From contig NW_026781872.1 of assembly GCF_031769215.1 (NCBI RefSeq), positions 186,001 through 250,000 of the forward strand: a stretch of 64,000 nt of DNA, in the 5' to 3' direction. A program made the translations under genes and the position numbers. Below, piece after piece: positions 30,996-63,850 of the stretch. The notes below the pieces were generated by a model. That model did not search any database. It was not told the DNA's origin and saw only the letters and a program-made list of their open reading frames with translations. The number at the start of each line of letters is the position of its first letter. Within the stretch, counting starts at the first letter, position 1. This stretch comes from Ylistrum balloti (lineage: Eukaryota).

Positions 30996-33900
30996 ATGGA
31001 GATCCTACAGACCGAAGATAGAGGTGGCGAAGTGATAATAGATAAATATTATGACGGAATTCGGTTTCCTGCAAACATCCCTGGGAATGTGAAAGACCAG
31101 TTGGTGTCAGTAAAGAACCTGAAACACACGAAAGGTGATGTCTTTCTCGACACCTTCCCTAAAACAGGTATGATATAGAAAATAAATGCTTTGGCACGTT
31201 TAGAATGTAATATTGGTATCTTATGTAGCGGTCCGTTCACGTTATTTCAACGCTATTATTATATATTATATCATTACTAACAATAATTGGAATATCTAAA
31301 GCTTTTATTTTTTAAATTTGTTTTTTGTTCGTTATTATACACGTGTGTATAAGATGCATTCCCTAAGTATTGTGGCATTTTCTCGTCAAAGTTATGTTCT
31401 TGTTATCATGATTGGTCGAAATATTGTGATAATGAAATAAATTTATAATGATAATATACTACTTAGTGCAGATATCTGCTGTAGAGAAGGATAATACACA
31501 TCTTATTCGTACTGCACTAACACGATCATTTCACGAACGCAGTGTTTGTACATCATTTCAGAAATCTGACTTTTTTCGTAAAGGATGCAGTCACGGAAAA
31601 GCGGATTAAAGATGTGATATAGCCAGCAACAAATGAACGATATGATGGTTCAGAAATGTTGCGGTAGTTCTAAAACAAACTATGTGATCGTTCAGAAATG
31701 ATGCTATGGTTTCGAGATAACGTAATGGTTCAGAAATGATGTGATCGTTAAGAGGAAATGTGATGATTACGTGAGGAATTATCATGTGTACAGTGTTTTT
31801 AAACATGAATATAACTGACTGAATTATACAGATGTTATATATCGTATACATATATTTACATTTTGTTTTTTATTTTAAAGTAAATGCATCGTCGCCATTT
31901 TGTTTCATATTCCACATTTAGTACTATAACATATATTATATCATTACTTAGAAGTGAAAAGTTCCCAATATTGTAAACGATCCAAAAAGCGACATATACG
32001 AGATTTAAAATAAAAGCAACTAATATATATATATATATGGTGTATTTTTCAGGAACACATTGGGCATATGAAATTTTGTATATGTTACAAACTGGGAAAG
32101 CAGAATATAGTTCTGACCCCTTTATGTGCTTAGAATTCCAAGCAACTGACAGACTGGATGCCTTCGAAGGTCCTAGGGTTTTAAAGAGCCATTTATATCC
32201 GCAACACATTCCGAAGTTCGTGGAAGACGGGAAATGTAAAGTTGTTTACATCTATCGTAACCCAAAGGATACAGCGGTATCATTGTACTCTTTTATCAAG
32301 CGTGTTAACGTAAATGGCCTCAAAGGGTACAACGGCACATGGGAACATTTCTTCGAAATATTCGCCACAAAACCAAGTAAGTAAAGAATTATTACTCATA
32401 AATATAATGCGTCTGATATCAGTAAACAAGATCAAGTATTTTCATCGTTCGCATGCCTGTATCAATATTCTTGTTTGTTCAATACCTATTCATGTCCGTA
32501 GGTCTGTTTTTTAATTATCATATATCTTAAATCCAACAGAATAGAGGAAAGTTGATTGAGGGTTTTCTACTTACGTTTATAAACAATGATGACTGTACTT
32601 TTACAACTTTTCTTGAATCTAAAGTGCACTACAACAGCTGGTTTGAACACGTGAAAGCGTGGCTGGATTTTAAAAAGGAAAATGCAGAAATACCAATCCT
32701 GATGGTGTCATACGAGGACATGAAAAAGGTATTTTATTCCATAGTGTATTATAATATCATAGTTTCATGGAATGCATCTCTTATCACAGTAACGATCTCA
32801 ACAAGTAATGTCTTCCCGTATGGGGAGTTCCGTTTAGTTATAACACTTAACATTGCTAACGTGTCGCAGATGTCACGGATTGAGATAGTCCATAGGGATT
32901 AAATCTAACACAAATCTAAACATTGCTACCAGATATGGGCATAAGTAAAACACAACAAGTATATATGTATATGATTTATAAGAAAAATAGTAACATATTT
33001 ATGTTTAACGTTTTTACAGGACTTAAGGAGCTGTGTTAAAAAGATGGCAGAACATTTGGATGTGAAACGAAATCCAGAATTCCTTGATGAGGTAGCGAAT
33101 AAATGTCAGTTTAATGTCATGTCAAAGGCACAGAGGTCAAATGTCAAAGAAACGACGCTCAGCAAAGATGGTAGCAACCCATTCTATAGGAAAGGTAACG
33201 AATTAAGGAAATATTAGGGTATTTAACTATATCGATGTTCAGTGTTTTTATCGTTACATTTTGTTAATGGCAACTTTGACTGTAGATCAGACATATGTGG
33301 ATTTCTATAGATACAAAGTAACTATACAAATAGTACAATCTAGTACAAATTGACGATAAGAAACAGTACTGTGATGTAATACGGAATGGTCTTTATAATA
33401 ATAATAATAATATTTTACAAATAAGACATGACAAGTAAGAATTACTGAGTTATATTTCATCCCAGGACAATTCTATGTGTTATGTTTATACCATCTAATG
33501 AAGTAAACTAGATCATACAGGCCTTCATTTCGAGAACTTGTCAGTAAAGCTGTGGACATAAGTGTAAAAATTTATAATATGAGTAGTGAAAAGTGATTAA
33601 ATTTTATCAAAAAATATCCTAGTGCTTCCCCTGCTGGATTTCTATGAAAATCCTTTAAAACCATTTGATCAACTCCATATCTTTTATCTTGTTAGAGACG
33701 AATGAAGGTCATATATTATAGGCTGTTATGGAAGTGTGACGATTGGATAATGTAGACTCTGATGCCGACACTTGTACTGGACAAAGTCAAAATTTCCATT
33801 TCTACTTAACATGTATTTCTGATTCAAATATCCTATCATGAAACACAATACATTTTACCTGGCGTCCTTGTATTGGTTTAGATGATGAATTTATTTCGTA

Positions 33901-39386: not shown

Positions 39387-40523
39387 ATGTGGCGATTACT
39401 TGTGATACTTCTGTCTTTGACAGCAATGCCTAATGCTTCGAATAACAACGACGCCGAAACGTCTTTATCTACAACAACAGATATTGTCAATAACAGATTG
39501 CCAACTCGGCCAGACGACATTGGCAAGTCGCTGACAAACCCAAAAATCACCGTCAAAGACATGTCGATTATTACCGATCAAAATCTAGTTACTTCGCCAG
39601 AGGATTGCGATAATATTGTGACGATAAATCAAGGATTACTTGACCGCACATCAACAATTTCAACATCGGAAGGTGTAGACAGTGTAACAACAACAAACGT
39701 GGAGAATATTGATTTCACAACTAATTCAGACGGTGTTGATGATAAATTTACAACTGGCTCAGAAGGTATTGATAATGAAGTGACAACTAACTCAGACGGT
39801 GTTGATGATAAATTTACAACTGGCTCAGAAGGTATTGATAATGAAGTGACAACTAACACAGACGTTGATGATAAATTTACAACTGGCTCAGAAGGTATTG
39901 ATAATGAAGTGACCACTAACTCAGACGGTATTGATGATAAATTTACAACTGGCTCAGAAGGTATTGATAATGAAGTGACAACTAACTCAGACGGTATTGA
40001 TGATAAATTTACAACTGGCTCAGAAGGTATTGATAATGAAGTGACAACTAACTCAGACGGTGTTGATGATAAATTTACAACTGGCTCAGACGGTATTGAT
40101 AATGAAGTGGCAACTAACACAGACGTTGATGATAAATTTACAACTGGCTCAGAAGGTGATAATGAATAACTCGGTGTTGATGAGAATTTACAACTGGCTC
40201 AGAAGGTATTGATGATGAAGTGACAACTAACTCAGACGGTATTGATGATAAATTTACAACTGGCTCAGGAGCTATTGGTAATGAAGAGACAACTAACGCA
40301 GACGATATCGATAATATACTGAAAACTAACACAGAAAGTATTGATGAATCATTCACAACTATTGCATACGGTATTGATAATGAATCGACAACTAATCTAA
40401 ATAATCAAGACAATCACGTGATCACTATGCATAATAGTGTTGATGAAATAAGAACAACTACAGGAAATGTGTTAGAAAACGCCGTGGAGAGTGGATGTGG
40501 AGAGAATGTTGAAGACCATCCAA
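39387..40523 (+). CDS. Exon: signal peptide MWRLLVILLSLTAMPNAS plus Thr/Asp-rich repeat region
   Basis: Acceptor ttacag at 39366, ATG at 39387, donor A|GTAAGT at 40524. The frame breaks in a damaged repeat unit at ~40157-40190 (track ORFs 39288..40169 and 40220..40531). Confidence 0.72.
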
Positions 40524-43500
40524 GTAAGTGATATCAATTACCAATGTAATAAAAACATTAAAATATTTAATTGTATCGGTTTTTATATCGAGTTTTCATT
40601 TTAGAACAGTTTGGCGACAGATATAAATTGTATAAATCCATAAACATTAACAGGTCTAACATTGTTTTCATTCGAACTCTTAAATCACAATAGCATTACA
40701 AACAAAAGCACGAAATATCCAATGTTTTGCAAATATCTCTTTTACAAATCGTAAAAAAATGTGTCACACAACAAGTGTAGAAATAAGGCGGTTTTACCAA
40801 ACGTTTTTGTGAAATTCTAACAACTTAAAGTCAGCTTCTGTTATCAAAAAGCGATCGCTGTTCGACATATAAATATCATGACATAATGCACTTTTTTAAT
40901 CACTATATATCCTTGGTAAGCTGTTCACGTGAACGTTTAGTTCTCCACGTTTACCACAACAAAACATACTTTGATTTATTTGATAAGCAGATTCGTTCAA
41001 ATATTGAAAAAACAAGGTTTTCGTTTTGTGGTTTTGAGTAGCCATGCTTTACATTATAGATTCTAGCAATTCTTCGGGACAATATTGTTTTTCCTCACGT
41101 TGAGCAACTAGCATGAGTAAACGCCTGTATGATGCTGTTTGATCATTTAACTACACTGAATTCTAGAAATACTGAACATGGAAGGAATTACGATTACATA
41201 TCAATCTTTTATCTTCCTAATTCTAGTTCTGGTATCAACGATGGATATTAAAACATCTCCAATGGAGATATCTCCTGGTCATGATGAAATCTGTATCCTC
41301 TGTCAAACCTTTATAGAACAACATAACGTAATCGATGTGTACAGCATTTCTTTATATCGGACAACAGAACATTCTGTAGCATTATTGACCAAAATTGTTT
41401 CCGCTGTCAAAATAAAAAATACAACTGCTGTACGTTGGTGGAACAAGAAATTGCGAAGCAGGAGAGGTGTAGAAGTGACTGCTGCTATTAGTTCGAATTA
41501 TTGCTTTCTTCGTTTGGCCATTCAGCGAATCGACACCTTATGTGATGATGCGAAGGAATATAGATGTGTCATGACAGCCCAAACCAACAACGGGCAAATA
41601 ACTGCTTTCTCTGACAGTAGGCACATACAACTTAACCCTGCAGGTGGGTAAATCTCGGATAATATTGAATGTTATGTTTCTGACGTTGAATTGAAATTCG
41701 TAGCAAGGAACTGGTTGCACGATTTAGGGCCTGATCATCATTGCTTCATTTCGGTTAACATTGTTCTTTGACTTTAAGATGTATCTTGAAGAAGCAAGAT
41801 GTCGCCAACTTACGGACAAAATCTTAACACAAGATTTAAAAAAATGAAAAGTATGAGGAAGTTATACGGTCGTCAAAGAGATCTCATTAGATTCTATTTG
41901 ATGTACGACATGAAGCCGGAAGTACATGATACTCGTTCGTTTTCCTGTTGGTTCCGTTGTTGCTTACTGCCGTCGATAAAACAGAAAATGCGCACTCCTT
42001 CGGAACTCCTGGCCTTAGTCTTCTTGTATATTTTCACGAGTCTTCATGTAAATATTTAGATATTTTGTCCTAGTGTATTAAATATGCGTACGGATAAATG
42101 TTGATATATTCTAGTTGTGTTTCTTACGTGTTTATACTTGTTGATTTTCACGGCTGAGCGGTAAAACTCGTTAGTCTGTAATCGTTAAAATATGACAGGT
42201 AGAGGGTGATCCAGGTACCGTTTCCAGGTTGTAACATTTAGTGCAGTAAAGTAATCAATCACCCGGCGTCTTTCGTATATAAAACATCTGGTCGGTCATA
42301 ATTTATTCTTTATTGAAAAATGTTTATCCACCTGAAACCTAAAATAAATACCATGTACAAGTGTTTATATAAGATGATACCGAATACATGTATATGTGTG
42401 TTTTACTGTTCATTCTTAACCAATTTATAACCTGTGTGCTACAGTTCATCCGTTACCAATGTGACTATACATTTCTTGCAGTTGACACTCTCTACACAAA
42501 TGATATTGAACTAAGGGACCCTGGTTATGTGAACAGTGAACTACAGCATGAATATACTGTAGGCACTAAAGTGGAACTGACCTGTAAAGGATTATCCGGC
42601 AGTGACGGTCTGGCACACAAATGGCTGGTAGCATCGGATGGGGATCCTTGTAATGTAAGTAATTCAACTATTTCAAAATCAAAATTTTGTTTTCCGCACG
42701 AAAAAAAAAAAAAAAAAAAGAAAAAAAGAGAATTTCATCACGCTATATCATCAAAGTAAATATATTCTCCAACAATTTGTAAGCAAACGACAAATACACA
42801 CTTTTTGTTATAGTATTAATAACTACAGGTCAAGTTTTGTGTCTTTTGTACAACCCACCCCCCTCCCCCCACCACTCTCGTTCTGCTCATTATTTTAACA
42901 AACATTAAACATGATCATCGTGTAGTGTTAGGAACACGAAATGACCATATAAGGCATTTCAAGCCGTAATTTCGTTCTTCTGTATCTATTTCTAAATTGA
43001 TTTTTAAACGGCGTTGTGTACTTGTTTATGTTTTGTACAACATCTACCACTGATGTTCTCCTGATAGTCTGTAAACACGGACCAGGATGATATCTACAAT
43101 AAATCCGGATACTTTCTCAATGACAATTATCACGATTTACCACTAAAGTGAAAGCGGTAATGGTAATTTTTATCTACTTTAAGAACCTAACATGGTCACC
43201 CGGTGTCGGTTTCTAAATGATAATATTTTGTTTGGTACAAGATTGAAAGACGTCCACTTAACGATTTACTAGGATGCTGATTTTTTGTTTGTTTGGAGAG
43301 AGTTGTAATTAATGTTTGACGTTAAGATGATTGCAATTAATTCCACTTACAGACTATCAGCGTTTCTTTGGTGATTTAAGTTGCTTACCCTTACAGACAA
43401 CCGGCGTGTCTTTGGTGATTTAAGTTACTTCCACTTCCAGACAATCAACTTACCTTTGGTAATTTAAGTTACTTCCCCTTACAGACTATCAGCGTAACTT

Positions 43501-46500
43501 TGGTGATTTAAGTTACTGACTCTTACAGACAATCAACGTTCCTTCGGTGATTTAAGTTACATTCCCTTACAGACAACCGGCGTGTCTTTGGTGATTTAAG
43601 TTACTTTCCCTTACATACTATCAACGTACCTTTGGTGATTTAAGTTACTTTCCCTTACAGACTACTAACGGACCTTTGGTGATTTAAGTCACTTCCCCTT
43701 ACAGACAATCAACTTACCTTTTGTAATTTAAGTTACTTCCCCTTACAGACAATCAACGTACCTTTGGTGATTTAAGTTACTTCCCCTTACAGACTTTCAA
43801 CGTACCTTTGGTGATTTAAGTTATTTCCCCTTACAGACTACCAACTTACCTGTGGTGATTTAAGTTACATTCCCTTACAGACTATCAACGTATCTTTGGT
43901 GATTTAAGTTACTTCCCCTTACAGACTATCAACGTACCTTTGGTGATTTAAGTTACTTCCCCTTACAGACTATCAACGTACCTTTGGTGATTTTTTCACC
44001 GATCATTGAACTAGATGGCTGTACTTATATAGTCAAAACTAATGCTATCCTAACCATTCCTAATGATACACGGACAATAGTTGTGTGGTGCTTGGTATCA
44101 GATGCAAGAACAGCAGAAGAGGAATGCGCCAATATCACAGAAAACAGCCTGACGAAAAGTGTTGTTATCATACCCGGTATGTATGTTTTACCTACCATAG
44201 ACAGCAGTTTAAATTTATCATGCCAACATATTTCCTTTGAATTGTGAAATTATTTTTTGTTATTTCAAATATGGGTTTTTCAATTGGAATATTATAATAT
44301 AACAATGGACCTGAAATAATCCGGAAGCCGACAATCCGGGAAAATCACCATCCGGACGGAAATGTTGCGGGACGGATCTACGTAACGTTAATTGTACCCA
44401 CTGGTCCGGAAATTCGAATTCCAGTTCAGAGTAATATTCCTGCAATAATCCGGACATGTTTTGTTAATACATGAAGACAATTTGCTATGTTTGGTCAGCC
44501 TACCCAGAGTTATACAGTACACCGTTAGTCACTGTGGGTAGTCACAGACAGCTGACAGATCACCGTCCTAGCCATACACCTGAGGATCTCGTTTCACCAT
44601 TAACAGTACTGTTGTACTGGATAAAATGAACTAAATGAAAAATATATATATAAATCAGAAGCGGGTGTACGTTTTTCCACTTGTATACCCCTTTCGAAAT
44701 CATAATTTCTACAATTTAACGATAAAATAACGGTAAAATGAACAAAGGCACGATGGCTTTACCCTACGTCTGGTTACACTGAACTTTCATGGTGTCTGAA
44801 CGTTTAGTGTAAACAATGTGAATACTTCCTGAGTGGGTTCCAGTCCAATCGGTCCATCTTTGATAAAATAATTTGCATTTTGAAATCAAATACCAAAAGA
44901 AAGGACAGGTCAGTACTCCTCAATCTTGATGTTAAATCCACATTTCAAGTTTTATACGACATGTATGTTATCGTATCTGCAGATAAGACGGCGTCCAATA
45001 ACTTGACCCTTGTCTGCAAACATTTTTACATTTCCTATGTAAAAAACCGGGCTTACTTGATAACGTATAATAACTCCATGAAGCCGGTTTAAGTTTGTTA
45101 CCATGGTAATCAGTCTGACAGTAAGGAAACATCTTCATGAAGCTGGTTTAAGTTTGTTACCATGGTAATCAGTCTGACAGTAAGGAAACATCTTCATGAA
45201 GCTGGTTTAAGTTTGTTACCATGGTAATCAGTCTGACAGTAAGGAAACATCTTCATGAAGCTGGTTTAAGTTTGTTACCATGGTAATCAGTCTGACAGTA
45301 AGGAAACATCTTCATGAAGCTGGTTTAAGTTTGTTACCATGGTAATCAGTCTGACAGTAAGGAAACATCTTCATGAAGCTGGTTTAAGTTTGTTACCATG
45401 GTAATCAGTCTGACAGTAAGGAAACATCTTCATGAAGCTGGTTTAAGTTTGTTACCATGGTAATCAGTCTGACAGTAAGGAAACATCTTCATGAAGCTGG
45501 TTTAAGTTTGTTACCATGGTAATCAGTCTGACAGTAAGGAAACATCTTCATGAAGCTTGTTTAAAGTCGGGTAATCTAGTTTGATATGCGAGTTCCCATT
45601 AACTGCCTGCGATGTTAGGGACTGATGAGACTGGGTCCAAGCTCTTAGCACTTCGACTATTTAGGAATAAAAACATTTTACTGAGAGTACAGGTTCTGTC
45701 TCGACTTCATAGATCGGCGTTTTACAGCATGGAAACAGCTTTTATTACATTTATGCAATGTTAAGTTTAAATGGTTTCATTACTGGACTCTACTGTATCT
45801 CACTGTTATTTATTGAAAGAGTATATTCACTTGTGTGTTTTTATGCAATCTTCTCAGACATAATACTTATGTTTATATACAGTTGCATCGGAGGAAAACG
45901 AAGATCCCTGTGTTGACCCATCAAATCGTAAGTAAAACAATGCATTCCTGACGACTAGTACTAACTCCAATCATCCCGACATACTGACTAGGTCGGTTCA
46001 AATGTCTTTGATACAAATCAGTTTTCAATCCTTTGGAACCCCCACATGTATACTGTAAATCACTTAAATTTCGTGAATACATTATTTCGTGAACTTATTT
46101 CTGCAAACATATTCGAGGATTGATGATTTCGCGAACGCTAATCTAGAAATGATTTTAAATTTCCGAATGCTGAGTTATTTGAGAAATGGATTCTGCAACG
46201 ATCCTTTATCGGCAACTTATAGCTTCATTTTGGTCACCAGGAGATCAATAGGCCTGACATTCATATCTAAACTTATCATACAGAAGTTGAACAACGGTTT
46301 TATATCTTATTATTTACTTAATATTTGTAAATAATGAAATTTAATGATATAATAATGATACTTCGTAAGTCATCAACTCTGTTAACATTTTAACACAAAA
46401 GTAGCAGCGGTGATGGATTAACGCATGCCCGAAACATGTCCTACAGTTGTACATTTTAATGACGCAATTTTCTGCTACAGTCAACAGTATGGGGATGCCG

Positions 46501-49500
46501 TTTAAACGAGTTGTGAATATGTTGAATTTGAAAGTAACATTTGTCAAGTAGATCTGTTTTTTGTTAATATGATAAGTTATTTATAAAACCAATGCATGTG
46601 TAAAGGGAAATAAAAACAAGTTAACACATGGATAACAAAAATGATCATCAAGAGATTCGTACAAATTATAGCGAGAAATTTGTGATTGGCTCTCCTCGCG
46701 AATTAACGCGAACAGAAATACCACACGAAGTGATTTACGGTACAAAACTTTAAGGAAAGCGAATGAACGCGAACATCAATACCACACGAAGTGATTTACG
46801 GTACAAAACTTTAAGGAAAGCGAATGAACGCGAACATCAATACCACACGAAGTGATTTACGGTACAAAACTTTAAGGAAAGCGAATGAACGCGAACATCA
46901 ATACCACACGAAGTGATTTACGGTACAAAACTTTAAGGAAAGCGAATGAACGCGAACATCAATACCACACGAAGTGATTGACGGTACAAAACTTTAAGGA
47001 AAGCGAATGAACGCGAACATCAATACCACACGAAGTGATTTACGGTAAAATACTTTAGGGAAAGCGAATGAACGCGAACATCAATACCACACGAAGTTAT
47101 TTACGGTACAAAACTTTAAGGAAAGCGAATGAACGCGAACATCAATACCACACGAAGTGATTTACGGTACAAAACTTTAAGGAAAGCGAATGAACGCGAA
47201 CATCAATACCACACGAAGTGATTTACGGTAAAATACTTTAGGGAAAGCGAATGAACGCGAACATCAATACCACACGAAGTTATTTACGGTACAAAACTTT
47301 AAGGAAAGCGAATGAACGCGAACATCAATACCACACGAAGTTATTTACGGTACAAAACTTTAAGGAAAGCGAATGAACGCGAACATCAATACCACACGAA
47401 GTGATTTACGGTACAATACTTTAAGGAAAGCGAATGAACGCGAACATCAATACCACACGAAGTGATTTACGGTACAAAACTTTAAGGAAAGCGAATGAAC
47501 GCGAACATCAATACCACACGAAGTGATTTACGGTAAAATACTTTAGGGAAAGTTAATTAATCCGAACATAAATACCATACGATATGCAAGTGATTTACGG
47601 TACAATACTTTAAGGAAATTCTTAACAGGTCATTTTGCCCTAGAAGTTCTATTTATAACTCATCTGAAACGCTTAGTTTTATTCTCCATTTTTTAAAAAA
47701 CTTTACTATGGAGTCTGTGTAATTCTTTCTTTTGTTCATGTTTTGTCTCAGCTTTCTTAAAGAACCTGTTTCACGGTAAAAGTAATTTTGACCACATTCC
47801 AATTCCATCGTTATTGCATGTTATTTGTAGTAACCCATTAAATTCCTACGAATTTATGTTTAAAAGTCCCGAAGTCCCCTATGGCCTGTACTATGGCCTT
47901 TTCTATGATCCCTGTCATGGGTGTGAGCCAGGGTCCACATCTTTGACTATGGTATTTGATTTGGTTCACATATTGGTATTTTCATGTCTTTGTCACTTCG
48001 ACGATCAAAGCTTCACATAGATAGACGTAGTGTATAATAGGCTCATACTTACTCCCGTCCGATTTTTATACTGCAGTTAAAATTGCAAAACAAGGGACAT
48101 AATTTGTCTCATGGATTTGCCTAGATTGGCATGAATTCTGTCCAGGTTGCATCAAAGAAATTTCGTATTGTTCAAGACAAAGTCAATCACTAATCCATGC
48201 TATTATTCACATGTCTTTCCTGGCTGCTACCAGACGTTTCTATTGACATAAATGTCGAATGTGACTGATGAATTTATTCGGATGACATAAATCTCAACCT
48301 ACTAGACAATATGAAAAAGTTCGTTTAACTTACTAACGTGGAGTAAAACAAAAAAATAAGTGATTTGGCTAGGCTAATAAAACCGTGCTAAGCGCTATAA
48401 CATGTGTTTATCTACTCAAATTGTGAAATTACAATGCATTTCATGTCCTAAATTGTCAATAATATAAAATCGAAAATTACTTTTGCATAACGTAGGGGGT
48501 GGTAATGGTTGGATAACGTACATACGTATTTACTGTTGATAGTACTTGTTGCATTGATTTAATGATTTGCAACTTTTTTTAAAGGTCCATTCATTTACAG
48601 ACCGGAAAACACAAGCTATCATCAAGGTGAACCATTAAACCTGACGTGTACTTTCAATGGCAGTCAACAATACGGGTGGTATTTCCGACGCTTACCCTCC
48701 GAGATATGGGTCCTTACTCAGCTTGAATATAATCAGGGTTGGAAATCCCTTACACTCATTATACCGAGCTTGTCCCTGGTCCACAGGGGATGGTACAAAT
48801 GCATGACAACCCATTGTTACTTAGATATGAGTAACAGGGATAACGATCAAACAATATTCATCGATGTTTTATATGGTAAGTAAAATTAACCCATAATTGC
48901 ATATCATGTTTAACAGCGTTAGATCCATAGGTAGAGAATCGGTCTGTTTCACAGGAAGATCCCTCGTGTGTGCTACGATCTTTATCAGTACGATAGGGTT
49001 TCCTTGGGAGTCTGCACTCAAAGACCTTTTTTTCATGTCGTTCTATAGCTATCAGGCAAAGCGCTTTATCAAAAATCGCTGTATTTAATGTCTCCACCAT
49101 AACGTGTTGTGTGAAAACCAACAGCTACTACAAAGAAATTCAAAATGCAAGAGACACTTCCTCTTCCGAAACACATGGTCTTATTCTACTTTTTTTCTGG
49201 AATCTCCGTGTAAATCTTACTTTTGTCCATAGTTTTCTCTTATCCTATTGTATTGAAGTTTGGAGTATAATTCTGTTCACGTGGTGGTATTGTTTTGTTT
49301 ATTTGTTTTTTATAAACAACGTAAACAAAACATGGTGCTGTTCAATTTAGCTCTTATTACTAAGATTGTCTTAATTCTTGATCAGTTTTAATTGATTATA
49401 TTCATGTCGTAATTTCATAAAAGGTGATGTCGATTATAACATTTCTTTGGGATATAAATATTAAATTTTATAATTCTTTTACAAAAACAATATTATCAAT

Positions 49501-55500: not shown

Positions 55501-58500
55501 AGGATGTAAAACTTTATTCCATAAATAAAGCATTTTATTTCTCAAAGAACATCGGAATAACAGAATAATAATCCGAATTCCAGTTCATTAAATGACAGCC
55601 GAAGTTATTCATTGAACGTTGAATGGCAAAGGATCTCTTTCAAGAGCAATGGAATTTAACCCAAGCACCAAATTAAATGAAAATGGATGGTATTTGTAGC
55701 ACCTTGAGTGACAACCCGAAAAAAACAAATCAAAAGGTCCGTAGAGCCTGTGCTACCACCCATTTAGTGTCGTAACCATAGGAGTATGACAGGGTTCAGT
55801 ATTTTCTTTTGAAAAAAGTATTAAAACCACAGTATTCATTACCAAGTGATATCATGTTGGATAGACAAGGACCAGTATGGCAATATGGTGGTAAATATGT
55901 ATAAAAATATTGCAAAATAAAAAAGTGGAAATGTATTATTTTTATTGACATTTTTGCAAAGAACTGAATCATGTATTTCAAATTTTGATGCAATCTTTAT
56001 TTGGCGCTTGAGGATGAGAACATTTGTTGATAATTTCAGGAAATTCGAAAAACCGTTAAAGGTGTCATTTAAAAGCAAAAAAAAATATATATTAGTATTT
56101 CAAATTGTTGGGGTTCTACAGGGGCCAATATCGCTAAAAATATGTAAAAACAAAGTGTACAAGGCCATAAAATGTCAGTTATCTCTATTAGTTCAGGAGT
56201 TTTATGGTGACCTGAATATAATCTGATTTACTTTGAGAGTGTTATGAAAATAAAATAAACGACTTAAGAAACTTTACTATCTTTTTGCGATGTAGGAAAA
56301 TTATTTCATATTGTAGATCACCCTTCTTGCGATGACGGATATTGGCAATGTGCTAATAAGGAATGTATACCAGTTTATGATATATGTGATGGTGACCTGG
56401 AATGCGTAGATGGAAGTGACGAATCTCACGAACTCTGTACAGGTATTAATATATTATGTAGACCAAACTTTTGACAAGAGGAGGGTTACTGTTACTTTCC
56501 ATCAATCTGAATTCATATAATTTTTTTACATTAAGATTTACACGAGATGATTATCATGTGTCTTGCACAGAAATCAACAAGGTGATTCCTCTATGAAATA
56601 CAAAGTCTTAGACAGAAAGAAGAATAAGAGCAAAATATAAAGAAAAGAAAACTATTGTATTTATGCTTTAATTGTACAACGATCTATTATATTTTTTACT
56701 TTTGAATTTTGTACTTTGTAATCACGGATACAATAATGAAATATCGTCGTCATAGATTTATTTTTAAGAATTGACAAAATATTGTTGGGATTTTAGAAAA
56801 TAGAAACGTGTTAACAAAGAAGAGAACTTGTAATTATCCCAACTATAGTCGCTTTAATTTGTCATGATTTACGCGTTCTTTGTTTCAGATAGAAACGTTC
56901 TACCATCAGAATATACTTTCCGGTGCCTTGAACCGAACCGTATTTTACCGTTGGCGAGGAAATGTGACGGTGTGCATGACTGTAAATCGGACGAATCATC
57001 ATGTTCGTCATTTACGACCTACTTCTCCTGTTCTTCATGGGTCGAAAGGACAAACGATGTCGCCTCGTCTGAGGTATCGGTTGACTACGGAATGCCACAA
57101 TACGGTACTTTTACGTTCAGTTACATTATGTTTAAGGATTTTATTTCATTGGCTAGGACTCTGAAAAGAACACTGAATTTTGAAGCAAGAAAACAAAATA
57201 TAACTATTTCATTCAGAATGGAAAATGAGGCAAAAAGTACAATATTGTTATCTCATGACACTTTAAGTCGTTATAAATAAGAGATTTGTTTACAAATGAT
57301 TACAAAAATCATAAGAAGACAGTTGAATGGTTATGTTAAGATAATTTACGTATAAAGGCGATAGCTCGATTTAAACTGAAATTGATATTCAGTACCGATG
57401 TTGTATTCCATGAAATAGAACTGTCATTTGACGGCGTAGTAAAGGTCAAGTGTTGGATGTGTTTAATAACATTTAAGAATATATATTCTTTGTTCGTATA
57501 TATTTATTTCTTGCAGGAAAAGTAAGCGTACACTGCCTCATCTCCAACATGACAGTTGACACAACCTGGACATTCTTACCAGAACAAGATGTAGTGATAC
57601 CATACGAGGTAGTATCAATTGTGTCTAATGCATTTTGGTTTGAGACAAAGTGGTCCAATAGGCAATTTCAAGAGATCGCTTACCAGTCTCGATTTCAACA
57701 GAAGGCAATGCTAGCTGCAGCATCATCTTGTGTGCAGTATATTCGGCCATGTAGCTACTTCGTTTACATCCCTGGAGTTGTGATTGAGTGGACGAACGGA
57801 GATGGTGATTTACACAGTATGGAAATTGCTGATTACGAAGGATGTTTTGGATTATGTACTAGAGCTGAGTGAGTAGATGTAACTTTAAGTTATATATCGT
57901 ATCAAATTGATTTGTTTATGTAAAAGCTTTCATTACAAGGCACATATATCATATCCATTTTACATATGATTAACTGACCTGACTACAAAAACAACAAAAG
58001 AAAACCCTATCCCTAGTATATAGTACAAAATACAAAGAAAAATTACTTAAACACTATCAAAGAACAATAAGACCAGATGTTCCGGAAAGGTAAACGTCTT
58101 CTGCTTTATCAATACCACTCGGCACGTGACTCTCGGTCAATCTAAGTAAAGTGAAATGTGATATAACACTTTTCTTGATATGTAATTTAACAAAGTTTTC
58201 ATATCTAAAGCAGGACCATTTCTGAGAATAGATATCCTGATAAAAATTGAATAGCAAAAACAAAAACCTCTTTTGACTTTACCAACCATTCCATGAACAT
58301 TTCCAATCAGTCATTTAATCTTCAGGTTAAACTTATCTGGAAAAAAACACTGCAAACGTTTTTTTAATGTTGCAGACACTGTATACTATGTTTGTGTTTT
58401 TTATGCTCATATAGCAGTCATTATGAATGCATACATTTATCATTGTGCTTAAATCCAAAACATGACTATGCGCTAAAACTTTGCTTTGATTATACACGGT

Positions 58501-61500
58501 ATAATCTTATCTACAGAATTTACCTGTTTATCTGCCACCGATTACAAAAGTTTTCTCAATGATATCTTCTGTAACAATAGAAGTCAACAGAAATTCTGTT
58601 CTTTTATCTAATCTCATTTAGAATTTATTTCATCATGTGACGAACACACCTTTTTGTTTACATTTCATATCGTAGAATGTGGAAAAAAAGTCTTACTAAA
58701 TGGAAATTTAATAGAGGAAAGTTAATTTGTTCGTTTCACAAGCAATGAACCACATCCGTGAATGGTTACACCCTGTCATATCAAAAATCCGTTCAGAATA
58801 TGGTACTGTAGAGGAAAATTTCAGCGGCGATACAAAGTTGAATGGTTTGTACTCTGGTGACCTTTCAACAAGTTCTTAGTGTAAGCATTATTGAATGGTT
58901 TGTACTCTGGTGACTGTCAACAAGTTCTAAGTGTAAGCATTATTGAATGGTTTGTACTCTGGTGACTGTCAACAAGTTCTTAGTGTAAGCATTATTGAAT
59001 GGTTTGTACTCTGGTGACCTTTCAACAAGTTCTAAGTGTAAGCATTATTGAATGGTTTGTACTCTGGTGACTGTCAACAAGTTCTAAGTGTAAGCATTAT
59101 TGAATGGTTTGTACTCTCTGGTGACCTTTCAACAAGTTCTAAGTGTAAGCATTATTGAATGGTTTGTACTCTGGTGACTGTCAACAAGTTCTTAGTGTAA
59201 GCATTATTGAATGGTTTGTACTCTGGTGACCTTTCAACAAGTTCTTAGTGTAAGCATTATTGAATGGTTTGTACTCTGGTGACTGTCAACAAGTTCTTAG
59301 TGTAAGCATTATTGAATGGTTTGTACTCTGGTGACTCAACAAGTTCTAAGTGTAAGCATTATTGAATGGTTTGTTCTCAACAAAGTGTAAGCATTATTGA
59401 ATGGTTTGTACTCTGGTGACCTTTCAACAAGTTCTTAGTGTAAGCATTATTGAATGGTTTGTACTCTGGTGACCTTTCAACAAGTTCTAAGTGTAAGCAT
59501 TATTGAATGGTTTGTACTCTGGTGACTGTCAACAAGTTCTAAGTGTAAGCATTATTGAATGGTTTGTACTCTGGTGACTGTCAACAAGTTCTAAGTGTAA
59601 GCATTATTGAATGGTTTGTACTCTGGTGACTGTCAACAAGTTCTTAGTGTAAGCATTATTGAATGGTTTGTACTCTGGTGACCTTTCAACAAGTTCTAAG
59701 TGTAAGCATTATTGAATGGTTTGTACTCTGGTGACTGTCAACAAGTTCTTAGTGTAAGCATTATTGAATGGTTTGTACTCTGGTGACTGTCAACAAGTTC
59801 TAAGTGTAAGCATTATTGAATGGTTTGTACTCTGGTGACCTTTCAACAAGTTCTTAGTGTAAGCATTATTGAATGGTTTGTACTCTGGTGACCTTTCAAC
59901 AAGTTCTTAGTGTAAGCATTATTGAATGGTTTGTACTCTCTGGTGACTGTCAACAAGTTCTAAGTGTAAGCATTATTGAATGGTTTGTACTCTCTGGTGA
60001 CCTTTCAACAAGTTCTAAGTGTAAGCATTATTGAATGGTTTGTACTCTGGTGACCTTTCAACAAGTTCTTAGTGTAAGCATTATTGAATGGTTTGTACTC
60101 TGGTGACTGTCAACAAGTTCTTAGTGTAAGCATTATTGAATGGTTTGTACTTTCAACTCTGTAAGCATTATTGAACCTACTCAACAAGTTCTTAGTGTAA
60201 GCATTATTGAATGGTTTGTACTCTGGTGAATGGTTTGTCAACTGTCAACAAGTTCTTAGTGTAAGCATTATTGTTCTTAGTGTAAGCATTATTGAATGGT
60301 TTGTACTCTCTGGTGACTGTCAACAAGTTCTTAGTGTAAGCATTATTGAATGGTTTGTACTCTGGTGACTGTCAACAAGTTCTTAGTGTAAGCATTATTG
60401 AATGGTTTGTACTCTCTGGTGACTGTCAACAAGTTCTAAGTGTAAGCATTATTGAATGGTTTGTACTCTGGTGACCTTTCAACAAGTTCTAAGTGTAAGC
60501 ATTATTGAATGGTTTGTACTCTCTGGCGACCTTTCAACAAGTTCTAAGTGTAACAAGTTCTCAACAAGTTCTTAGTGTAAGCATTATTGAATGGTTTGTA
60601 CCCTCTGGTGACCTTTCAACAAGTTCTTAGTGTAAGCATTATTGAATGGTTTGTACTCTGGTGACCTTTCAACAAGTTCTTAGTGTAAGCATTATTGAAT
60701 GGTTTGTACTCTGGTGACCTTTCAACAAGTTCTTAGTGTAAGCATTATTGAATGGTTTGTACTCTGGTGACTGTCAACAAGTTCTAAGTGTAAGCATTAT
60801 TGAATGGTTTGTACTCTGGTGACCTTTCAACAAGTTCTAAGTGTAAGCATTATTGAATGGTTTGTACTCTGGTGACTGTCAACAAGTTCTTAGTGTAAGC
60901 ATTATTGAATGGTTTGTACTCTGGTGACCTTTCAACAAGTTCTTAGTGTAAGCATTATTGAATGGTTTGTACTCTCTGGTGACTGTCAACAAGTTCTAAG
61001 TGTAAGCATTATTGAATGGGTTGTACTCTGGTGACCTTTCAACAAGTTCTTAGTGTAAGCGTTATTGAATGGTTTGTACTCTCTGGTGACTGTCAACAAG
61101 TTCTAAGTGTAAGCATTATTGAATGGTTTGTACTCTGGTGACCTTTCAACAAGTTCTAAGTGTAAGCATTATTGAATGGTTTGTACTCTGGTGACCTTTC
61201 AACAAGTTCTTAGTGTAAGCATTATTGAATGGTTTGTACTCTGGTGACCTTTCAACAAGTTCTAAGTGTAAGCATTATTGAATGGTTTGTACTCTCTGGT
61301 GACCTTTCAACAAGTTCTAAGTGTAAGCATTATTGAATGGTTTGTACCCTCTGGTGACCTTTCAACAAGTTCTTAGTGTAAGCATTATTGAATGGTTTGT
61401 ACTCTGGTGTCAACAAGTTCTAGTGTAAGCAATTGAAGTTCTCAACAAGTGTAAGCATTATTGAATGGTTTGTACTCTGGTGACTGTCAACAAGTTCTAA

Positions 61501-63850
61501 GTGTAAGCATTATTGAATGGTTTGTACTCTGGTGACCTTTCAACAAGTTCTTAGTGTAAGCATTATTGAATGGTTTGTACCCTCTGGTGACCTTTCAACA
61601 AGTTCTTAGTGTAAGCATTATTGAATGGTTTGTACTCTGGTGACTGTCAACAAGTTCTAAGTGTAAGCATTATTGAATGGTTTGTACTCTGGTGACTGTC
61701 AACAAGTTCTTAGTGTAAGCATTATTGAATGGTTTGTACTCTGGTGACCTTTCAACAAGTTCTTAGTGTAAGCATTATTGAATGGTTTGTACTCTGGTGA
61801 CCTTTCAACAAGTTCTAAGTGTAAGCATTATTGAATGGTTTGTACTCTGGTGACCTTTCAACAAGTTCTTAGTGTAAGCATTATTGAATGGTTTGTAGTT
61901 CTCTGGTGACCTGTCAACAAGTTCTAAGTGTAAGCATTATTGAATGGTTTGTACTCTGGTGACCTTTCAACAAGTTCTTAGTGTAAGCATTATTGAATGG
62001 TTTGTACTCTGGTGACTGTCAACAAGTTCTAAGTGTAAGCATTATTGAATGGTTTGTACTCTGGTGACCTTTCAACAAGTTCTTAGTGTAAGCATTATTG
62101 AATGGTTTGTACTCTGGTGACTGTCAACAAGTTCTAAGTGTAAGCATTATTGAATGGTTTGTACTCTGGTGACTGTCAACAAGTTCTAAGTGTAAGCATT
62201 ATTGAATGGTTTGTACTCTGGTGACCTTTCAACAAGTTCTTAGTGTAAGCATTATTGAATGGTTTGTACTCTCTGGTGACTGTCAACAAGTTCTTAGTGT
62301 AAGCATTATTGAATGGTTTGTACTCTGGTGACCTTTCAACAAGTTCTTAGTGTAAGCATTATTGAATGGTTTTGTGACTTTCAACAAGTTCTAGTGTAAG
62401 ACTCTGTCTTTCAACAAGTTCTAAGTGTAAGCATTATTGAATGGTTTGTACTCTGGTGACCTTTCAACAACAAGTTCTGAATGGTTTGTAGTGTAAGCAT
62501 TATTGAATGGTTTATACTCTCTGGTGACTGTCAACAAATTCTAAGTGTAAGCATTATTGAATGGTTTGTACTCTCTGGTAGTGTAAGCATTATTGAATGG
62601 TTTGTACTCTGGTGACTTTCAACAAGTTCTTAGTGTAAGCATTATTGAATGGTTTGTACTCTGGTGACCTTTCAACAAGCATTATTGAATGTGTAATCTC
62701 AACATTATTGAATGGTTTGTACTCTGGTGACCTTTCAACAAGTTCTTAGTGTAAGCATTATTTGGAATCAACAAGTTCTTAGTGTAACTGAATGGTTTGT
62801 ACTCTGGTGACTTTCAACAAGTTCTAGTGTAAGCATTATTGAATGGTTTGTACTATCTGGTTCTAAGTGTAAGCATTATTGAATACATTTTGACTTGAAA
62901 TTAAAAACATTATTTACAATTAAAACGACTTGTATTTTACCAATGTCACAGCCTATATAGGACTCAACACGTGTTTAATATATTTGCAGTGGATTATAAC
63001 TCTGAAGTATTGAGATCAACAAGTTCTGAAAGTATTGAACAATTAGTGTAAGCATTATTGAATGGGAGTGTATACACATATATTTTAAATTTATGAGGCT
63101 TAATGTCTGTTACCTAATTTTCATTTAAACTATTGCAGATATTTTACTTAATGTGCACTATTTCGTTATTTATCAGATGTTGGCTGTATTTAATGGAGGT
63201 TTGTCAATCATTTGCTGGTAGGGATGTTTATTGGTTTAAAAGTATAAATGGTATCATAATTCACAATATTGATTTCAAATTTTAGATCTACACTATCACA
63301 ACAGACAGCCTAGTTACGTTCCATGTAAAAATGGTCTTTATTATGACCCATCCCTTCAGTGCTTGATGAATTTTGACCCTACTGGAGAGCCGATGGCCTG
63401 TCGTGACCTCACGCACCTCGAAAACTGTGGTAACTGATGACATTATGTACACTTAAATCATCTTGTTATTTGGCAGGAAGGAAAGCGATATAATTTCAGT
63501 CCTTTGTTATGTTTATATTGAAAGATTGTAAAAATGCACAAATGAAGCTAAACAGTAATATCAATTCATCCGCTATAACATTAATATACGGACAATCATC
63601 AAAGTTACAAAGTTTGGAATTAATTTGATAACATATCATATCCTACGTGACTATATACTATAATACTGTAAGAATACTTATTACGTGAAGAAAGATTGAA
63701 ATGTAGCAACCATCCCTCTTTATTTTTTTTCAGATCGTTTCACGTGTCCCGAATACTATGTTAAATGTCCAGATTCTTTCTGTATCCATATGAAATATAT
63801 ATGTGACGGTACTGGGCACTGTCCAAACCGTGAGGACGAATTAGACTGTG
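39387..63850 (+). CDS. Partial multi-exon gene for a mosaic secreted or cell-surface protein (signal peptide, acidic Thr-rich repeats, Ig-like domains, C-type lectin, LDLa repeats, PAN-like segment); GRL101-like receptor ectodomain; 3' end outside the window
   Basis: Hand-spliced exons: 39387-40523, 41227-41643, 42482-42654, 43969-44176, 45883-45927, 48585-48875, 49653-49686, 50422-50588, 50984-~51060, [gap], 53024-53164, 54676-54789, 56317-56442, 56889-57104, 57517-57868, [gap], 63286-63429, 63734-63850. Phases chain correctly apart from the two gaps and a frame break at ~40160. Confidence 0.7.
39717..40290 (+). repeat. Coding tandem repeat, 66 bp (2x33 bp) unit TTNSDGVDDKFTTGSEGIDNEV, ~9 units
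   Basis: Visible in the DNA and in the ORF translation. Two units are 63 bp variants (TNTDVDDKF). Confidence 0.95.
41227..41643 (+). CDS. Exon: V-type Ig-like domain (ICILC...W...LRLAI..TLCDDAKEYRC)
   Basis: Phase 1-1 exon of 417 nt. The C..D...Y.C F-strand motif is present. It lies within track ORF 41178..41651. Confidence 0.75.
42482..44176 (+). CDS. Two exons (42482-42654, 43969-44176) forming a second Ig-like domain (VELTC...HKW...DGCTY...VVWC)
   Basis: Acceptor ttgcag and phase 0 donor AAT|GTAAGT. The last ccccttacag acceptor of the 44-bp array gives in-frame TINVPLVIFSPIIELDGCTY. Donor G|GTATGT. Confidence 0.7.
43340..43993 (+). repeat. 44-bp minisatellite, ~15 units, made of a polypyrimidine tract, AG and the first 8 codons of the exon
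   Basis: Unit actatcaacgtacctttggtgatttaagttacttccccttacag. AG falls at exact 44-nt steps from 43352 to 43968 (AT at 43616). Confidence 0.97.
44295..44460. mobile_element. Possible MITE relic with repeated aatccgga subterminal motifs (pogo/Tc1-like)
   Basis: Several (a)atccgga motifs are clustered after a tacaatggacct-like start. No second terminus was found. Confidence 0.35.
44860..45076 (+). mobile_element. Relic of a Penelope-like RT region
   Basis: Track ORF 44880..45092 contains YVIVSADK(T)ASNNLTLVCKHFY. This matches the VPADKAxNNxxxVCK motif that precedes the RT of the family seen at 53390-54600. Confidence 0.6.
45077..45565. repeat. 59-bp tandem array, 8 near-identical units plus a partial
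   Basis: Unit catgaagctggtttaagtttgttaccatggtaatcagtctgacagtaaggaaacatctt starts at 45077, 45136, 45195 and so on. It contains the palindrome TTACCATGGTAA. Confidence 0.97.
45883..45927 (+). CDS. 45-nt linker exon (VASEENEDPCVDPSN)
   Basis: tatatacag acceptor, C|GTAAGT donor, phase 1-1, open frame. Confidence 0.7.
46051..46742. mobile_element. ~690 bp TA-ended MITE
   Basis: Left end TACTGTAAATCACTT (46051) and right end AAGTGATTTACGGTA (46728-46742) form a 15-bp inverted repeat with one mismatch. There is no coding capacity. Confidence 0.78.
46704..47620. repeat. 61-bp tandem array, ~15 units, made of the MITE right terminus plus flank
   Basis: Unit gaacgcgaacatcaataccacacgaagtgatttacggtacaaaactttaaggaaagcgaat. 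Period 61 (46765, 46826 and so on). Confidence 0.97.
48585..48875 (+). CDS. Exon: I-set/C2-type Ig domain (LNLTC..GWYF..LTLIIPSL..HRGWYKC), missed by the ORF track
   Basis: tttttaaag acceptor, 291 nt open, G|GTAAGT donor, phase 1-1. The Cys-Trp-Cys core is intact. Confidence 0.88.
49653..51060 (+). CDS. Three exons (49653-49686, 50422-50588, 50984-~51060): N-terminal two-thirds of a C-type lectin domain
   Basis: Spliced: ESCRQNGILIAG|HVYEFAF...ASSCAANNGTIASIHN...VNIG|LSLTANTLSWQNFVWADGSPLTFRE. Phases 1-2-1 chain. The last donor is weak and the C-terminal lectin exon was not found. Confidence 0.75.
50066..50235 (+). mobile_element. Degenerate copy of the tRNA-derived SINE
   Basis: cccagtgataacgca..gcctttcacc...ggggttcgattcc, and 3' part ttcgcgcgcttccatcc shared with 2455-2470. 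Confidence 0.7.
51770..52560 (+). mobile_element. Decayed mariner (Tc1/mariner) transposase with internal deletions
   Basis: Fragments MRKFSARYIPRHLT, VMVSVFWDAGGI, LLRQLRDNIK..RRG, DNA and FELIEHSPYPPDIARSYFYLFPKLK. The last is the YSPDLAPSD equivalent (track ORF 52322..52516). Confidence 0.88.
53024..57104 (+). CDS. Four LDL-receptor class A exons (53024-53164, 54676-54789, 56317-56442, 56889-57104)
   Basis: [131 protein letters not shown]. All are phase 1-1 with GT-AG. Confidence 0.92.
53390..54600 (+). mobile_element. Decayed Penelope-like reverse transcriptase with 3' tail
   Basis: Across stops and frameshifts: KNTKELL, FDFSILNTSIPH (duplicated at ~53600-53700), YTEGEIVKMIE, CAPLLADLFLF*YEADFIEQL, IDNVLS (YIDD equivalent), IYP..L..KDT, DKSDDFNLLIVNF, GIYLSQ. 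RT identity is firm; the PLE assignment is from recalled motifs. Confidence 0.78.
57517..57868 (+). CDS. Exon: segment ending in the start of a PAN/Apple-like domain (CSYFVYIPG...GCFGLC)
   Basis: ttcttgcag acceptor, open frame (track ORF 57549..57872), GA|GTGAGT donor, phase 1 to 2. The domain label is from pattern recall only. Confidence 0.72.
58838..62883. repeat. ~4.05 kb satellite of 52-55 bp units (~75 copies) inside an intron
   Basis: Unit gaatggtttgtactct(ct)ggtgac(cttt|tgt)caacaagttct(t|a)agtgtaagcattatt. There are several scrambled patches. Confidence 0.98.
63286..63850 (+). CDS. Two exons (63286-63429, 63734-63850): atypical LDLa-like repeat and LDLa repeat of GRL101 type
   Basis: VPCKNGLYYDPSLQCLMNFDPTGEPMACRDLTHLENC and FTCPEYYVKCPDSFCIHMKYICDGTGHCPNREDELDC. 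Both are phase 1-1 with GT-AG. Confidence 0.9.

Follow-up and report, generated by a model that had tools for sequence, protein, structure and literature searches.

A probable GRL101-like receptor gene with a mosaic ectodomain in the scallop Ylistrum balloti

Introduction

Does a long run of exons on a scallop contig, encoding a signal peptide and then immunoglobulin-like (Ig-like), lectin-like and LDLa domains, belong to one receptor gene, to two separate products, or to a gene copy in decay? The question is raised by a 64,000-nucleotide stretch of the Ylistrum balloti genome (RefSeq assembly GCF_031769215.1, 648 Mb; contig NW_026781872.1, positions 186,001 to 250,000 of the forward strand), referred to here at its full length as 'the window' (C15:186001-250000 in our contig numbering). 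An initial annotation, made from the sequence alone, had chained exons between positions 39387 and 63850 into an ectodomain with an acidic mucin-like stalk, three Ig-like domains, a C-type lectin, an LDLa series and a PAN-like segment, and had predicted leucine-rich repeat (LRR) and seven-transmembrane (7TM) exons further right. On following this up, we consider it likely that the region forms the 5' three quarters of one scallop protein-coding gene; a 'GRL101-like' type C leucine-rich-repeat G-protein-coupled receptor (LGR; GPCR for the wider class) whose ectodomain is a mosaic.

Materials and methods

Reading frames were taken from stop to stop on the + strand, domains were located by Pfam scans of the window frames, and searches were made exon by exon or with the database protein P0134, a 1734-residue 'uncharacterized protein' of Ylistrum balloti (RefSeq LOC132543479). 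The right flank, C15:250001-330000, is called L003, with L003:1 the first base past the window end. Our run search returned no RNA run covering the locus, its sole match being a DNA-like run from a second individual (X1), the contigs of which break in the repeats of exon 1 and leave 40027-40238 uncovered. Whether the exons form one gene was therefore judged by comparison with Mizuhopecten yessoensis, at the locus of the gene for protein P0001 together with 10 kb of flank (L011); ratios of nonsynonymous to synonymous divergence (dN/dS) were calculated exon by exon between the two species by the Nei-Gojobori method. The 7TM tree is a quick FastTree of 19 7TM segments with a midpoint root, from which Lymnaea GRL101 itself was left out.

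Results

One exon chain leads into a type C LRR receptor

On the + strand, the exon chain runs from an ATG at 39387 to the end of an LDLa exon at 63850 and continues through the flank to a stop; 22 coding pieces with a total of 6153 nt (2050 codons plus stop), consistent in phase throughout and with phase 1 predominating. Working from the N-terminus, we see a signal peptide, acidic Thr-rich repeats, a V-like and a C-like Ig domain, a third Ig domain (Ig3) and a divergent C-type-lectin-like domain. The middle of the chain encodes three LDLa repeats and a degenerate fourth, an unnamed Cys-containing domain, a four-Cys motif and two further LDLa repeats; these are followed by about ten LRRs, a rhodopsin-type 7TM domain and a tail of ~150 residues that resembles a pseudokinase fragment. 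The chain first proposed keeps both its end points and its dominance of phase 1, with corrections, among them that exon 1 is broken by a TAA and that a 34-nt mini-exon had been missed. The domains and the exon chain are directly observed, as are conservation and selection for everything from Ig3 through to the stop.

The LRR/7TM exons that had been predicted to the right of the window are present, at L003:1198-2982 and 3732-3868:

L003:1198-2982, + strand: exon of 1785 nt, 1.2-3.0 kb past the window, encoding LDLa6, the LRRs and transmembrane helices (TM) 1-6; open frame
L003:3732-3868, + strand: TM7 exon, with NPFLY
L003:5907-5970, 6347-6573 and 6888-7013, + strand: tail exons and stop, from the mapping of P0134

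The first of these exons sits within a single open frame of 611 residues (L003:1170-3002) that contains the sixth LDLa, an LRRNT, some ten LRRs and TM1-TM6 with DRF and CWFP; the frame at L003:3641-3895 carries TM7 with its NPFLY. Best among the database matches to the LRR/7TM protein are M. yessoensis proteins named GRL101 (71% and 66% identity), bearing out the resemblance to molluscan GRL101-like proteins suggested at the outset. Pfam searches with P0134 return LRR_8 at 6.4e-47 (six stretches), Ldl_recept_a at 4.5e-35 (five stretches) and 7tm_1 at 5.6e-27 (residues 1324-1584), and the layout has what defines a type C LGR: a rhodopsin-type 7TM domain, LRRs directly before TM1 in the TM1-6 exon, and LDLa N-terminal of the LRRs. 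P0134 itself aligns to the window and L003 at 100% identity as a single GT-AG chain, starting from the second ATG of the signal peptide (39426).

Ig3, the lectin-like domain and the LDLa repeats form one unit

The exons from Ig3 to the right edge of the window are as follows:

48585-48875, + strand: Ig3 exon, phase 1-1, found by Pfam; outside the RefSeq model
49653-49686, + strand: mini-exon of 34 nt, the first of the lectin-like domain (SCRQNGILIA), phase 1-2; counterpart at L011:2329-2362
50422-50588, + strand: lectin-like exon a, phase 2-1, acceptor uncertain, 67% amino-acid identity to M. yessoensis; outside the RefSeq model
50984-51062, + strand: lectin-like exon b (GLSLTANTLSWQNFVWADGSPLTF), phase 1-2; dN/dS 0.05
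51576-51736, + strand: lectin-like exon c (C-terminal Cys, ...VACEW), phase 2-1; dN/dS 0.33
53024-53164, + strand: LDLa1, phase 1-1; Pfam Ldl_recept_a 1e-9
54676-54789, + strand: LDLa2, phase 1-1; Pfam 2e-11
56317-56442, + strand: LDLa3, phase 1-1; Pfam 1.1e-7
56889-57104, + strand: degenerate LDLa4 and the start of the unnamed Cys-containing domain; Pfam 0.035, 62% identity to M. yessoensis over 88 residues
57517-57855, + strand: unnamed domain (the 'PAN-like' segment), frame stop at 57870; 66% identity to M. yessoensis, dN/dS 0.16
58838-62762, no strand: satellite of 52/53-bp units, ~3.9 kb, most of the intron between the unnamed-domain and four-Cys exons; repeat scan
63286-63429, + strand: four-Cys motif exon (CKNG...CLMNFDPTGEPMACRDLTHLENC), phase 1-1; 82% identity to M. 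yessoensis
63734-63850, + strand: LDLa5, phase 1-1, last exon within the window; Pfam 1.2e-7

Ig3 is recognised by two Pfam families over 48566-48880 (Ig_3 at 5.4e-7 and 30.5 bits against a cut-off of 30; Ig_2 at 5.6e-7 and 30.2 bits against a cut-off of 27). Its orthologue in M. yessoensis, L011:874-1194, is 46% identical, keeps the donor TATG|GTAAG and gives a dN/dS of 0.34. The LDLa series of the initial annotation is seen by Pfam at 53.0, 54.7, 56.3 and 63.7 kb (1e-7 to 2e-11), with a weak match at 56.9 kb, and the four-Cys motif recurs in Aplysia P0137 and in the scallop paralogues described below.

In M. yessoensis, the un-annotated 10 kb upstream of P0001 hold counterparts of Ig3, of the three lectin-like exons, of LDLa1-4 and of the 'PAN-like' exon, with 46-85% amino-acid identity, and the entire series (Ig3, mini-exon, lectin-like exons a, b and c, LDLa1-4, unnamed domain, Cys motif, LDLa5 and the big LRR/7TM exon) is colinear within 14 kb. 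Splice sites and phases are common to both species from Ig3 onward, the acceptor of lectin-like exon a excepted. The mini-exon was revealed by tblastx; its cag| acceptor and |gtgagt donor are identical in the two species, it supplies the lectin-like domain with its first Cys, and it corresponds to the 'TCxDxGV' of paralogues P0132 and P0133. Since its change of phase from 1 to 2 fits solely between Ig3 and lectin-like exon a, these exons are locked into one transcript; the succession of phases 1-2-1-2-1 likewise makes Ig3, the lectin-like domain and LDLa1 one reading unit. All exons compared have dN/dS values of 0.05-0.34, with dS of at least 1, and the big LRR/7TM exon has 0.15. A predicted fusion of Ig3, lectin-like domain, LDLa repeats and LRR-7TM part is therefore well supported, by the conserved exon order, splice sites and phases, by purifying selection and by the scallop paralogues. 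Of the fused Ig, lectin and LDLa receptor first proposed, it is this portion that stands, the link to exon 1, Ig1 and Ig2 being one of phase logic.

The database entry for the M. yessoensis gene shows two peculiarities. GenBank P0001 begins within the 'PAN-like' exon, at an internal Met, and so misses some ten upstream exons, and relative to Y. balloti its 7TM exon has a 1-nt deletion (within L011:14075-14175) which truncates the protein in TM5. As the exons downstream of it are still conserved, the deletion may be a fault of the assembly or a lesion of recent date.

Identity of the lectin-like domain, the unnamed domain and the tail

The lectin-like exons (49653-51736) encode the motifs of a C-type lectin-like domain (CTLD) in order; the paired Cys, a 'C..NG.LA.IH' helix, a WIGL-like strand and W.W.DGS. 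Amongst the language-model neighbours of the corresponding segment in the closest paralogue, 28 of 30 are Lectin_C (score 0.93), and two distant members of the clade, P0136 and Littorina P0139, have Pfam-grade Lectin_C at the same position. The best PDB match to a profile of lectin-like exon a is the CTLD of type II antifreeze protein, at an E-value of 0.48. The C-type lectin of the initial annotation keeps its hallmark motifs, in four exons unlike the pieces originally chained; the scallop sequences gave no significant match by Pfam, by phmmer against the Lectin_C segments of relatives or by PDB sequence search, and this counts against the assignment. We take the evidence for a divergent C-type lectin-like domain to be suggestive, not significant. 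Canonical Ca2+-dependent sugar binding by such a domain appears unlikely: the translations of exons b and c contain no EPN/QPD tripeptide and no WND.

The PAN/apple assignment of 57517-57855 is unsupported. No Pfam match was obtained at E<=1, a three-sequence profile found nothing in the PDB, and there was no atlas neighbour; the AlphaFold model, with a predicted local distance difference test score (pLDDT) of 40, is unusable for a fold search.

At the other end of the protein, all 120 PDB matches to the cytoplasmic tail (L003:6347-6573, 6888-7013) are kinases, the best being the JH2 pseudokinase of TYK2 (E-value 1.5e-5), to which it aligns as "VIHGNVSDRNVYI" versus "LVHGNVCGRNILL". The motif 'SFLHRRNVIHGNVSDRNVYI' matches the alphaE helix and, with HGN standing for HRD, the catalytic loop. 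This likeness covers ~75-130 residues only (positions 87-159 of 258 in the PK_Tyr_Ser-Thr profile, for P0135); there is no catalytic Asp, and the HRD Asp, DFG and N-lobe that would make up a complete kinase domain are not all present. At most, the tail would be a fragment of a pseudokinase C-lobe. The scallop paralogues share the tail; the relatives from Aplysia and Logan do not have it.

Exon 1 and the Ig1/Ig2 cassette

Upstream of Ig3 the chain consists of:

39387-40155, + strand: exon 1, first part, with start codon, signal peptide (MWRLLVILLSLTA...) and acidic Thr-rich 22-residue tandem repeats; open frame
40156-40205, + strand: frame break in the repeat array with TAA at 40167-40169, treated by RefSeq as a 50-nt GT..AG intron (junction 40155|40206)
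40206-40523, + strand: exon 1, second part, degenerate repeats, donor CAA|GTAAGT, phase 1; from P0134
41227-41643, + strand: Ig1 exon, V-set Ig by motif and fold, phase 1-1; no counterpart in the RefSeq model
42482-42654, + strand: Ig2a, first half of a C-like Ig, phase 1-0; P0134 junctions
43969-44176, + strand: Ig2b, second half of the C-like Ig, phase 0-1; P0134 junctions
45858-45927, + strand: 70-nt candidate exon, ctcag|...|gtaagt, reading D-IILMFIYSCIGGKRRSLC-stop when entered in phase 1; from the sequence

The 'acidic mucin-like stalk' is borne out as regards its signal peptide and its acidic, Thr-rich 22-residue repeats (66-nt period, 6.8 copies; 21-23% D+E and 22-27% S+T). With 1-2% Pro, the array differs from a classical proline-rich mucin. 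Within 30-49 kb, exon 1 is the best match to the signal-peptide and mucin exon of the Pecten maximus paralogue, albeit a weak one (E-value 0.005).

All three Ig-like domains of the initial annotation are upheld, Ig3 through Pfam, Ig1 by motif and fold, and Ig2 by its exon structure. In Ig1 residues C25, W70, D107, Y111 and C113 are invariant in the alignment, giving the C...W...DxxxYxC of a V-set domain; its AlphaFold model (pLDDT 90.9) is matched by Foldseek to VHH/nanobodies and CRIg with probability 1.0 and TM-scores of 0.6-0.8. Ig2 is C-like and is split over two exons at the same position as in M. yessoensis P0121. Of the eight proteins matched to Ig1 (see below), two, P0122 and P0127, are low-complexity artefacts.

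Several minisatellites are found in this part of the locus. One of 44 bp (14.9 copies, 43337-43993) carries a 3' splice-site-like 'ccccttacag' in every unit, the Ig2b acceptor (43969) lying in the last; two more occur in the 4.4 kb that separate Ig2b from Ig3, at 45077-45564 (59 bp x 8.3, 99% identity) and 46698-47618 (61 bp x 15, 95%). Further upstream, at 25378-32902 on the + strand, the neighbours are tandem copies of a sulfotransferase-like gene ('YPQHIPKF...IYIYRNPKDTAVS').

Is the cassette part of the receptor?

The proposed inclusion of exon 1, Ig1 and Ig2 in the receptor is argued for by phase compatibility, by the lack of any other signal-peptide exon and by the weak likeness of exon 1 to the paralogue exon; it is the least secure part of the chain, and a number of observations weigh against the single-gene reading here. 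Ig1 and Ig2 have their kin in membrane proteins built of Ig domains only (P0121, P0123), the nearest to Ig1 being bivalve proteins of this family (P0121, 35% identity). A protein search with the Ig1 exon over 1.84 billion representatives produced eight matches, none of the eight with a 7TM domain and none an orthologue. A word search with the Ig2 part of P0134 gave P0134 alone amongst long annotated proteins. The scallop paralogues do not have the cassette, the other Ig1-like copies in the Y. balloti genome adjoin no GRL101-like locus, and in M. yessoensis the 873 nt upstream of Ig3 (L011) yielded no conserved block. The RefSeq model, for its part, keeps Ig2 and is without Ig1, Ig3, the 34-nt mini-exon and lectin-like exon a; given the way Gnomon builds models, its 5' end was perhaps made without RNA support. 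To these is added the lack of an RNA run at the locus.

The alternative to which such observations point is that there are two products. Exon 1, Ig1 and Ig2 would then make a short transcript of their own, ending in or after 45858-45927 and encoding a member of the Ig-pair membrane protein family; the receptor would pass from exon 1 straight to Ig3, or begin with a first exon that has escaped recognition, and the RefSeq fusion of Ig2 would be an artefact or one isoform. The kin of Ig1 and Ig2 are indeed single-pass, Ig-only proteins: P0121 is made of two V+C pairs, a membrane span and RRLRSRG-stop, and P0123 of three pairs. Moreover, both the closest Y. balloti paralogue (on contig C586) and a P. 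maximus protein pass directly from signal peptide and mucin-like sequence to the Ig3-type domain. Preceded by a good acceptor, the 70-nt exon, when entered in the phase of Ig2b, reads through a short hydrophobic stretch and KRR to a stop; the place in the chain first given to this exon ending at 45927 is thereby in doubt. Against this, the hydrophobic stretch of ~13 residues is too short for a membrane span, and a perfect GTAAGT donor after the 70-nt piece would be needless for a last exon. The 70-nt exon is missing from the RefSeq model, and neither comparative nor RNA support was found for it; it might serve as an alternative end or as a poison exon, or be nothing of the kind. Neither Ig1 nor Ig2 comes with its own signal peptide, so that both rely on exon 1, which is also the sole visible signal-peptide exon for Ig3. 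Ig3 needs a phase-1 signal-peptide exon upstream and none was found between Ig2b and Ig3 (44.2-48.6 kb), which favours exon 1 in the same gene. The cassette exons, finally, keep phase 1 throughout, so that their inclusion in the receptor costs nothing. Taking both sides together, we lean slightly towards the V+C cassette being included in receptor mRNAs, and regard the two-product arrangement, its receptor side included, as rather improbable.

If the cassette does belong to the receptor, it may have been inserted by exon shuffling into the phase-1 first intron, from bivalve Ig-pair membrane proteins, and might be subject to alternative splicing. The two such proteins to hand, M. yessoensis XP_021374253.1 (P0121) and Saccostrea cucullata LOC134251491 (P0123), share with the scallop gene a V-like exon and an identically split C-like domain at 25-35% identity; they differ in consisting of Ig pairs only, with no LDLa, LRR or 7TM part, P0121 ending in a single membrane span.

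Blemishes of this copy

Three blemishes of the Y. balloti sequence, and the polymorphism of its N-terminus, also speak against an intact receptor. In exon 1, one repeat unit is 16 nt short, hence the TAA at 40167-40169; the intron by which RefSeq bridges it has 50 nt, compared with at least 305 nt for the other introns of the gene. The acceptor of lectin-like exon a, AG in M. yessoensis, reads GG. The unnamed-domain exon runs into a stop four codons past a conserved Cys, and its sole phase-1 donor (that of RefSeq) lies within the codon of this Cys and removes it. Lastly, individual X1 differs at 12 sites in exon 1 and Ig1, of which 10 change the amino acid, at a density equal to that of the intron. 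These points taken together would fit an N-terminus that evolves under relaxed or diversifying conditions, or else an early decay of the copy.

It could accordingly be argued that the family layout is real and that this copy is decaying, or a null allele, with the full receptor no longer made. The frame break would require an implausibly short intron to bypass it, the lectin acceptor has been lost, the one usable donor after the unnamed-domain exon deletes a conserved Cys, the amino-acid-changing polymorphism of exon 1 and Ig1 looks neutral, and the M. yessoensis orthologue has its own 1-nt deletion in the 7TM exon. Saying so must be set against the state of the remainder. All exons from Ig1 to the stop are open, including the LRR/7TM exon of 594 codons with DRF, CWFP and NPFLY, and the intactness of this exon argues against old decay; the remaining splice sites are canonical and the dN/dS of the big exon is, as given above, low. 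There is an in-frame way round each blemish: phase-1 donors within the repeats of exon 1, for lectin-like exon a the nearest in-frame AG at 50420-50421 (20 nt upstream, adding eight residues), and for the unnamed domain the donor at 57855. Repeat arrays are also error-prone in assemblies, and the X1 contigs leave the exon-1 break uncovered. We hold a decaying or null copy to be decidedly unlikely, and retain one receptor gene as the preferred reading.

Relatives of the gene

In the tree, the gene and its scallop paralogues fall into a mollusc clade (support 99) together with 'GRL101-like' sequences of Aplysia, Littorina and Saccostrea; outside it fall the many-LDLa GRL101 type (Bulinus and Macrosteles), RXFP and LGR5, the two LGR5 sequences splitting off with support 100. 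N-termini vary within the clade: CUB plus lectin, lectin, MAM (below the Pfam cut-off) and Ig plus lectin are all seen. The Y. balloti genome contains at least 25 GRL101-like loci.

The closest paralogue, C586:263000-298000 on the minus strand, has the full set of Ig, lectin, LDLa, LRR and 7TM exons in the same order, with a first exon for signal peptide and S/T-rich sequence 3.5 kb before the Ig exon. It seems under-annotated; the sole database protein apparently derived from C586 is P0007, a 374-residue 'relaxin receptor 2-like' fragment. Its orthologues are Pecten maximus LOC117338985 (P0132, 1547 residues) and an Argopecten irradians 'GRL101-like' protein (P0133, 1527 residues), and P0135 (1442 residues) is a further Y. 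balloti paralogue. P0132, P0133 and P0135 are alike in running from signal peptide, S/T-rich segment, Ig and lectin-like domain through an LDLa series, the unnamed domain, the four-Cys motif and two LDLa repeats to LRRs, 7TM domain and kinase-like tail, and their LRR/7TM exon is 51-53% identical to that of the present gene. They differ from it in lacking the V+C Ig cassette and the long acidic 22-residue repeats, and in having an extra exon after the unnamed domain.

Outside scallops, the nearest described system is the 'GRL101-like' GPCR cluster SudRes2 of Biomphalaria sudanica, published in 2025; an expanded, polymorphic family with CTL, LDL and LRR parts for which the authors propose a role in immune recognition (PMC12297450). 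It too is of LGR type, with an N-terminal C-type-lectin-like domain before LDLa and LRR; compared by description, it differs in being from a gastropod and in having one LDL repeat, with no Ig, unnamed Cys domain or kinase-like tail described (PMC12297450). Lymnaea stagnalis GRL101 and its many-LDLa kin (Bulinus P0145, Macrosteles P0142) share the combination of LDLa, LRR and rhodopsin-type 7TM domain of a type C LGR. In that type 7-12 LDLa repeats follow one another (7-8 stretches were detected in P0145 and P0142) with nothing else at the N-terminus, whereas the scallop gene has five or six, interleaved with other domains, and no long LDLa series. RXFP1 and RXFP2 have the same type C layout, but with a single LDLa, no Ig or lectin domain and a defined peptide hormone; the 7TM identity to fish RXFP2a is 34%.

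The suggestion of a novel architecture finds no support: the locus is already one RefSeq gene, its layout is annotated in other scallops, and the combination of CTL, LDL and LRR has been published (PMC12297450). The initial annotation had allowed that the architecture might prove common in bivalve proteins, and in part this is so (RefSeq models, other scallops). What was known beforehand, then, is the RefSeq gene, its scallop relatives and the lectin, LDLa and LRR GPCRs of Biomphalaria; the Ig modules and the pseudokinase-like tail appear undescribed, and we found no publication in the literature on Ig-bearing GRL101-like members. In practical terms, RefSeq LOC132543479 leaves out four well-supported exons and spans a frame break by means of a 50-nt intron.

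Discussion

How might such a receptor work? We would envisage the distal modules as capturing a ligand; the LRR/LDLa part would then pass this binding on to the 7TM bundle, much as happens in RXFP1/2, with G-protein signalling next. Activation of RXFP1/2 depends on the LDLa module that adjoins the LRRs, possibly in the role of a tethered ligand (PMC4561518).

As to the ligand itself, one candidate is a conserved insulin/relaxin-type peptide, as proposed for GRL101 proper, in which case the distal modules would be spacer or co-receptor parts. The 7TM and LRR parts do group with type C LGRs, RXFP included, and away from LGR5, and an insulin-like ligand for GRL101 has been put forward by Veenstra (bioRxiv 10.1101/2021.04.15.440029). 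In the tree, nonetheless, the gene is not placed with the many-LDLa GRL101 pair, the N-termini of its clade are variable, and the number of such loci in the genome is unlike a system of one hormone and one receptor; we think such a hormone unlikely. A lineage-specific ligand, non-self or environmental, is the more likely of the two because the family is large, mollusc-specific and domain-shuffled and the N-terminus is polymorphic. The receptor may have the pattern-recognition role first suggested.

More tentatively, and as a doubtful proposition at present, a scallop LGR may have captured an immune-type Ig V+C cassette in a subfamily with a JH2-like pseudokinase fragment on its cytoplasmic tail. 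Provided that the cassette and the tail fragment are both expressed and functional, the result would be a GPCR that couples a variable, pattern-recognition-style ectodomain to a kinase-derived intracellular scaffold; a layout undescribed for LGRs.

More broadly, the GRL101-like branch of the LGR family is an expanded one in molluscs, and in snails a lectin-bearing cluster of this kind has recently been tied to resistance against schistosomes. Domain shuffling affects the N-terminus of these receptors, where Ig, lectin-like, CUB or probably MAM modules are found according to lineage, and the present locus and its scallop paralogues provide a clean example, exon by exon and in phase 1. If expressed, these receptors would be candidates for GPCR-based sensing of non-self or of the environment.

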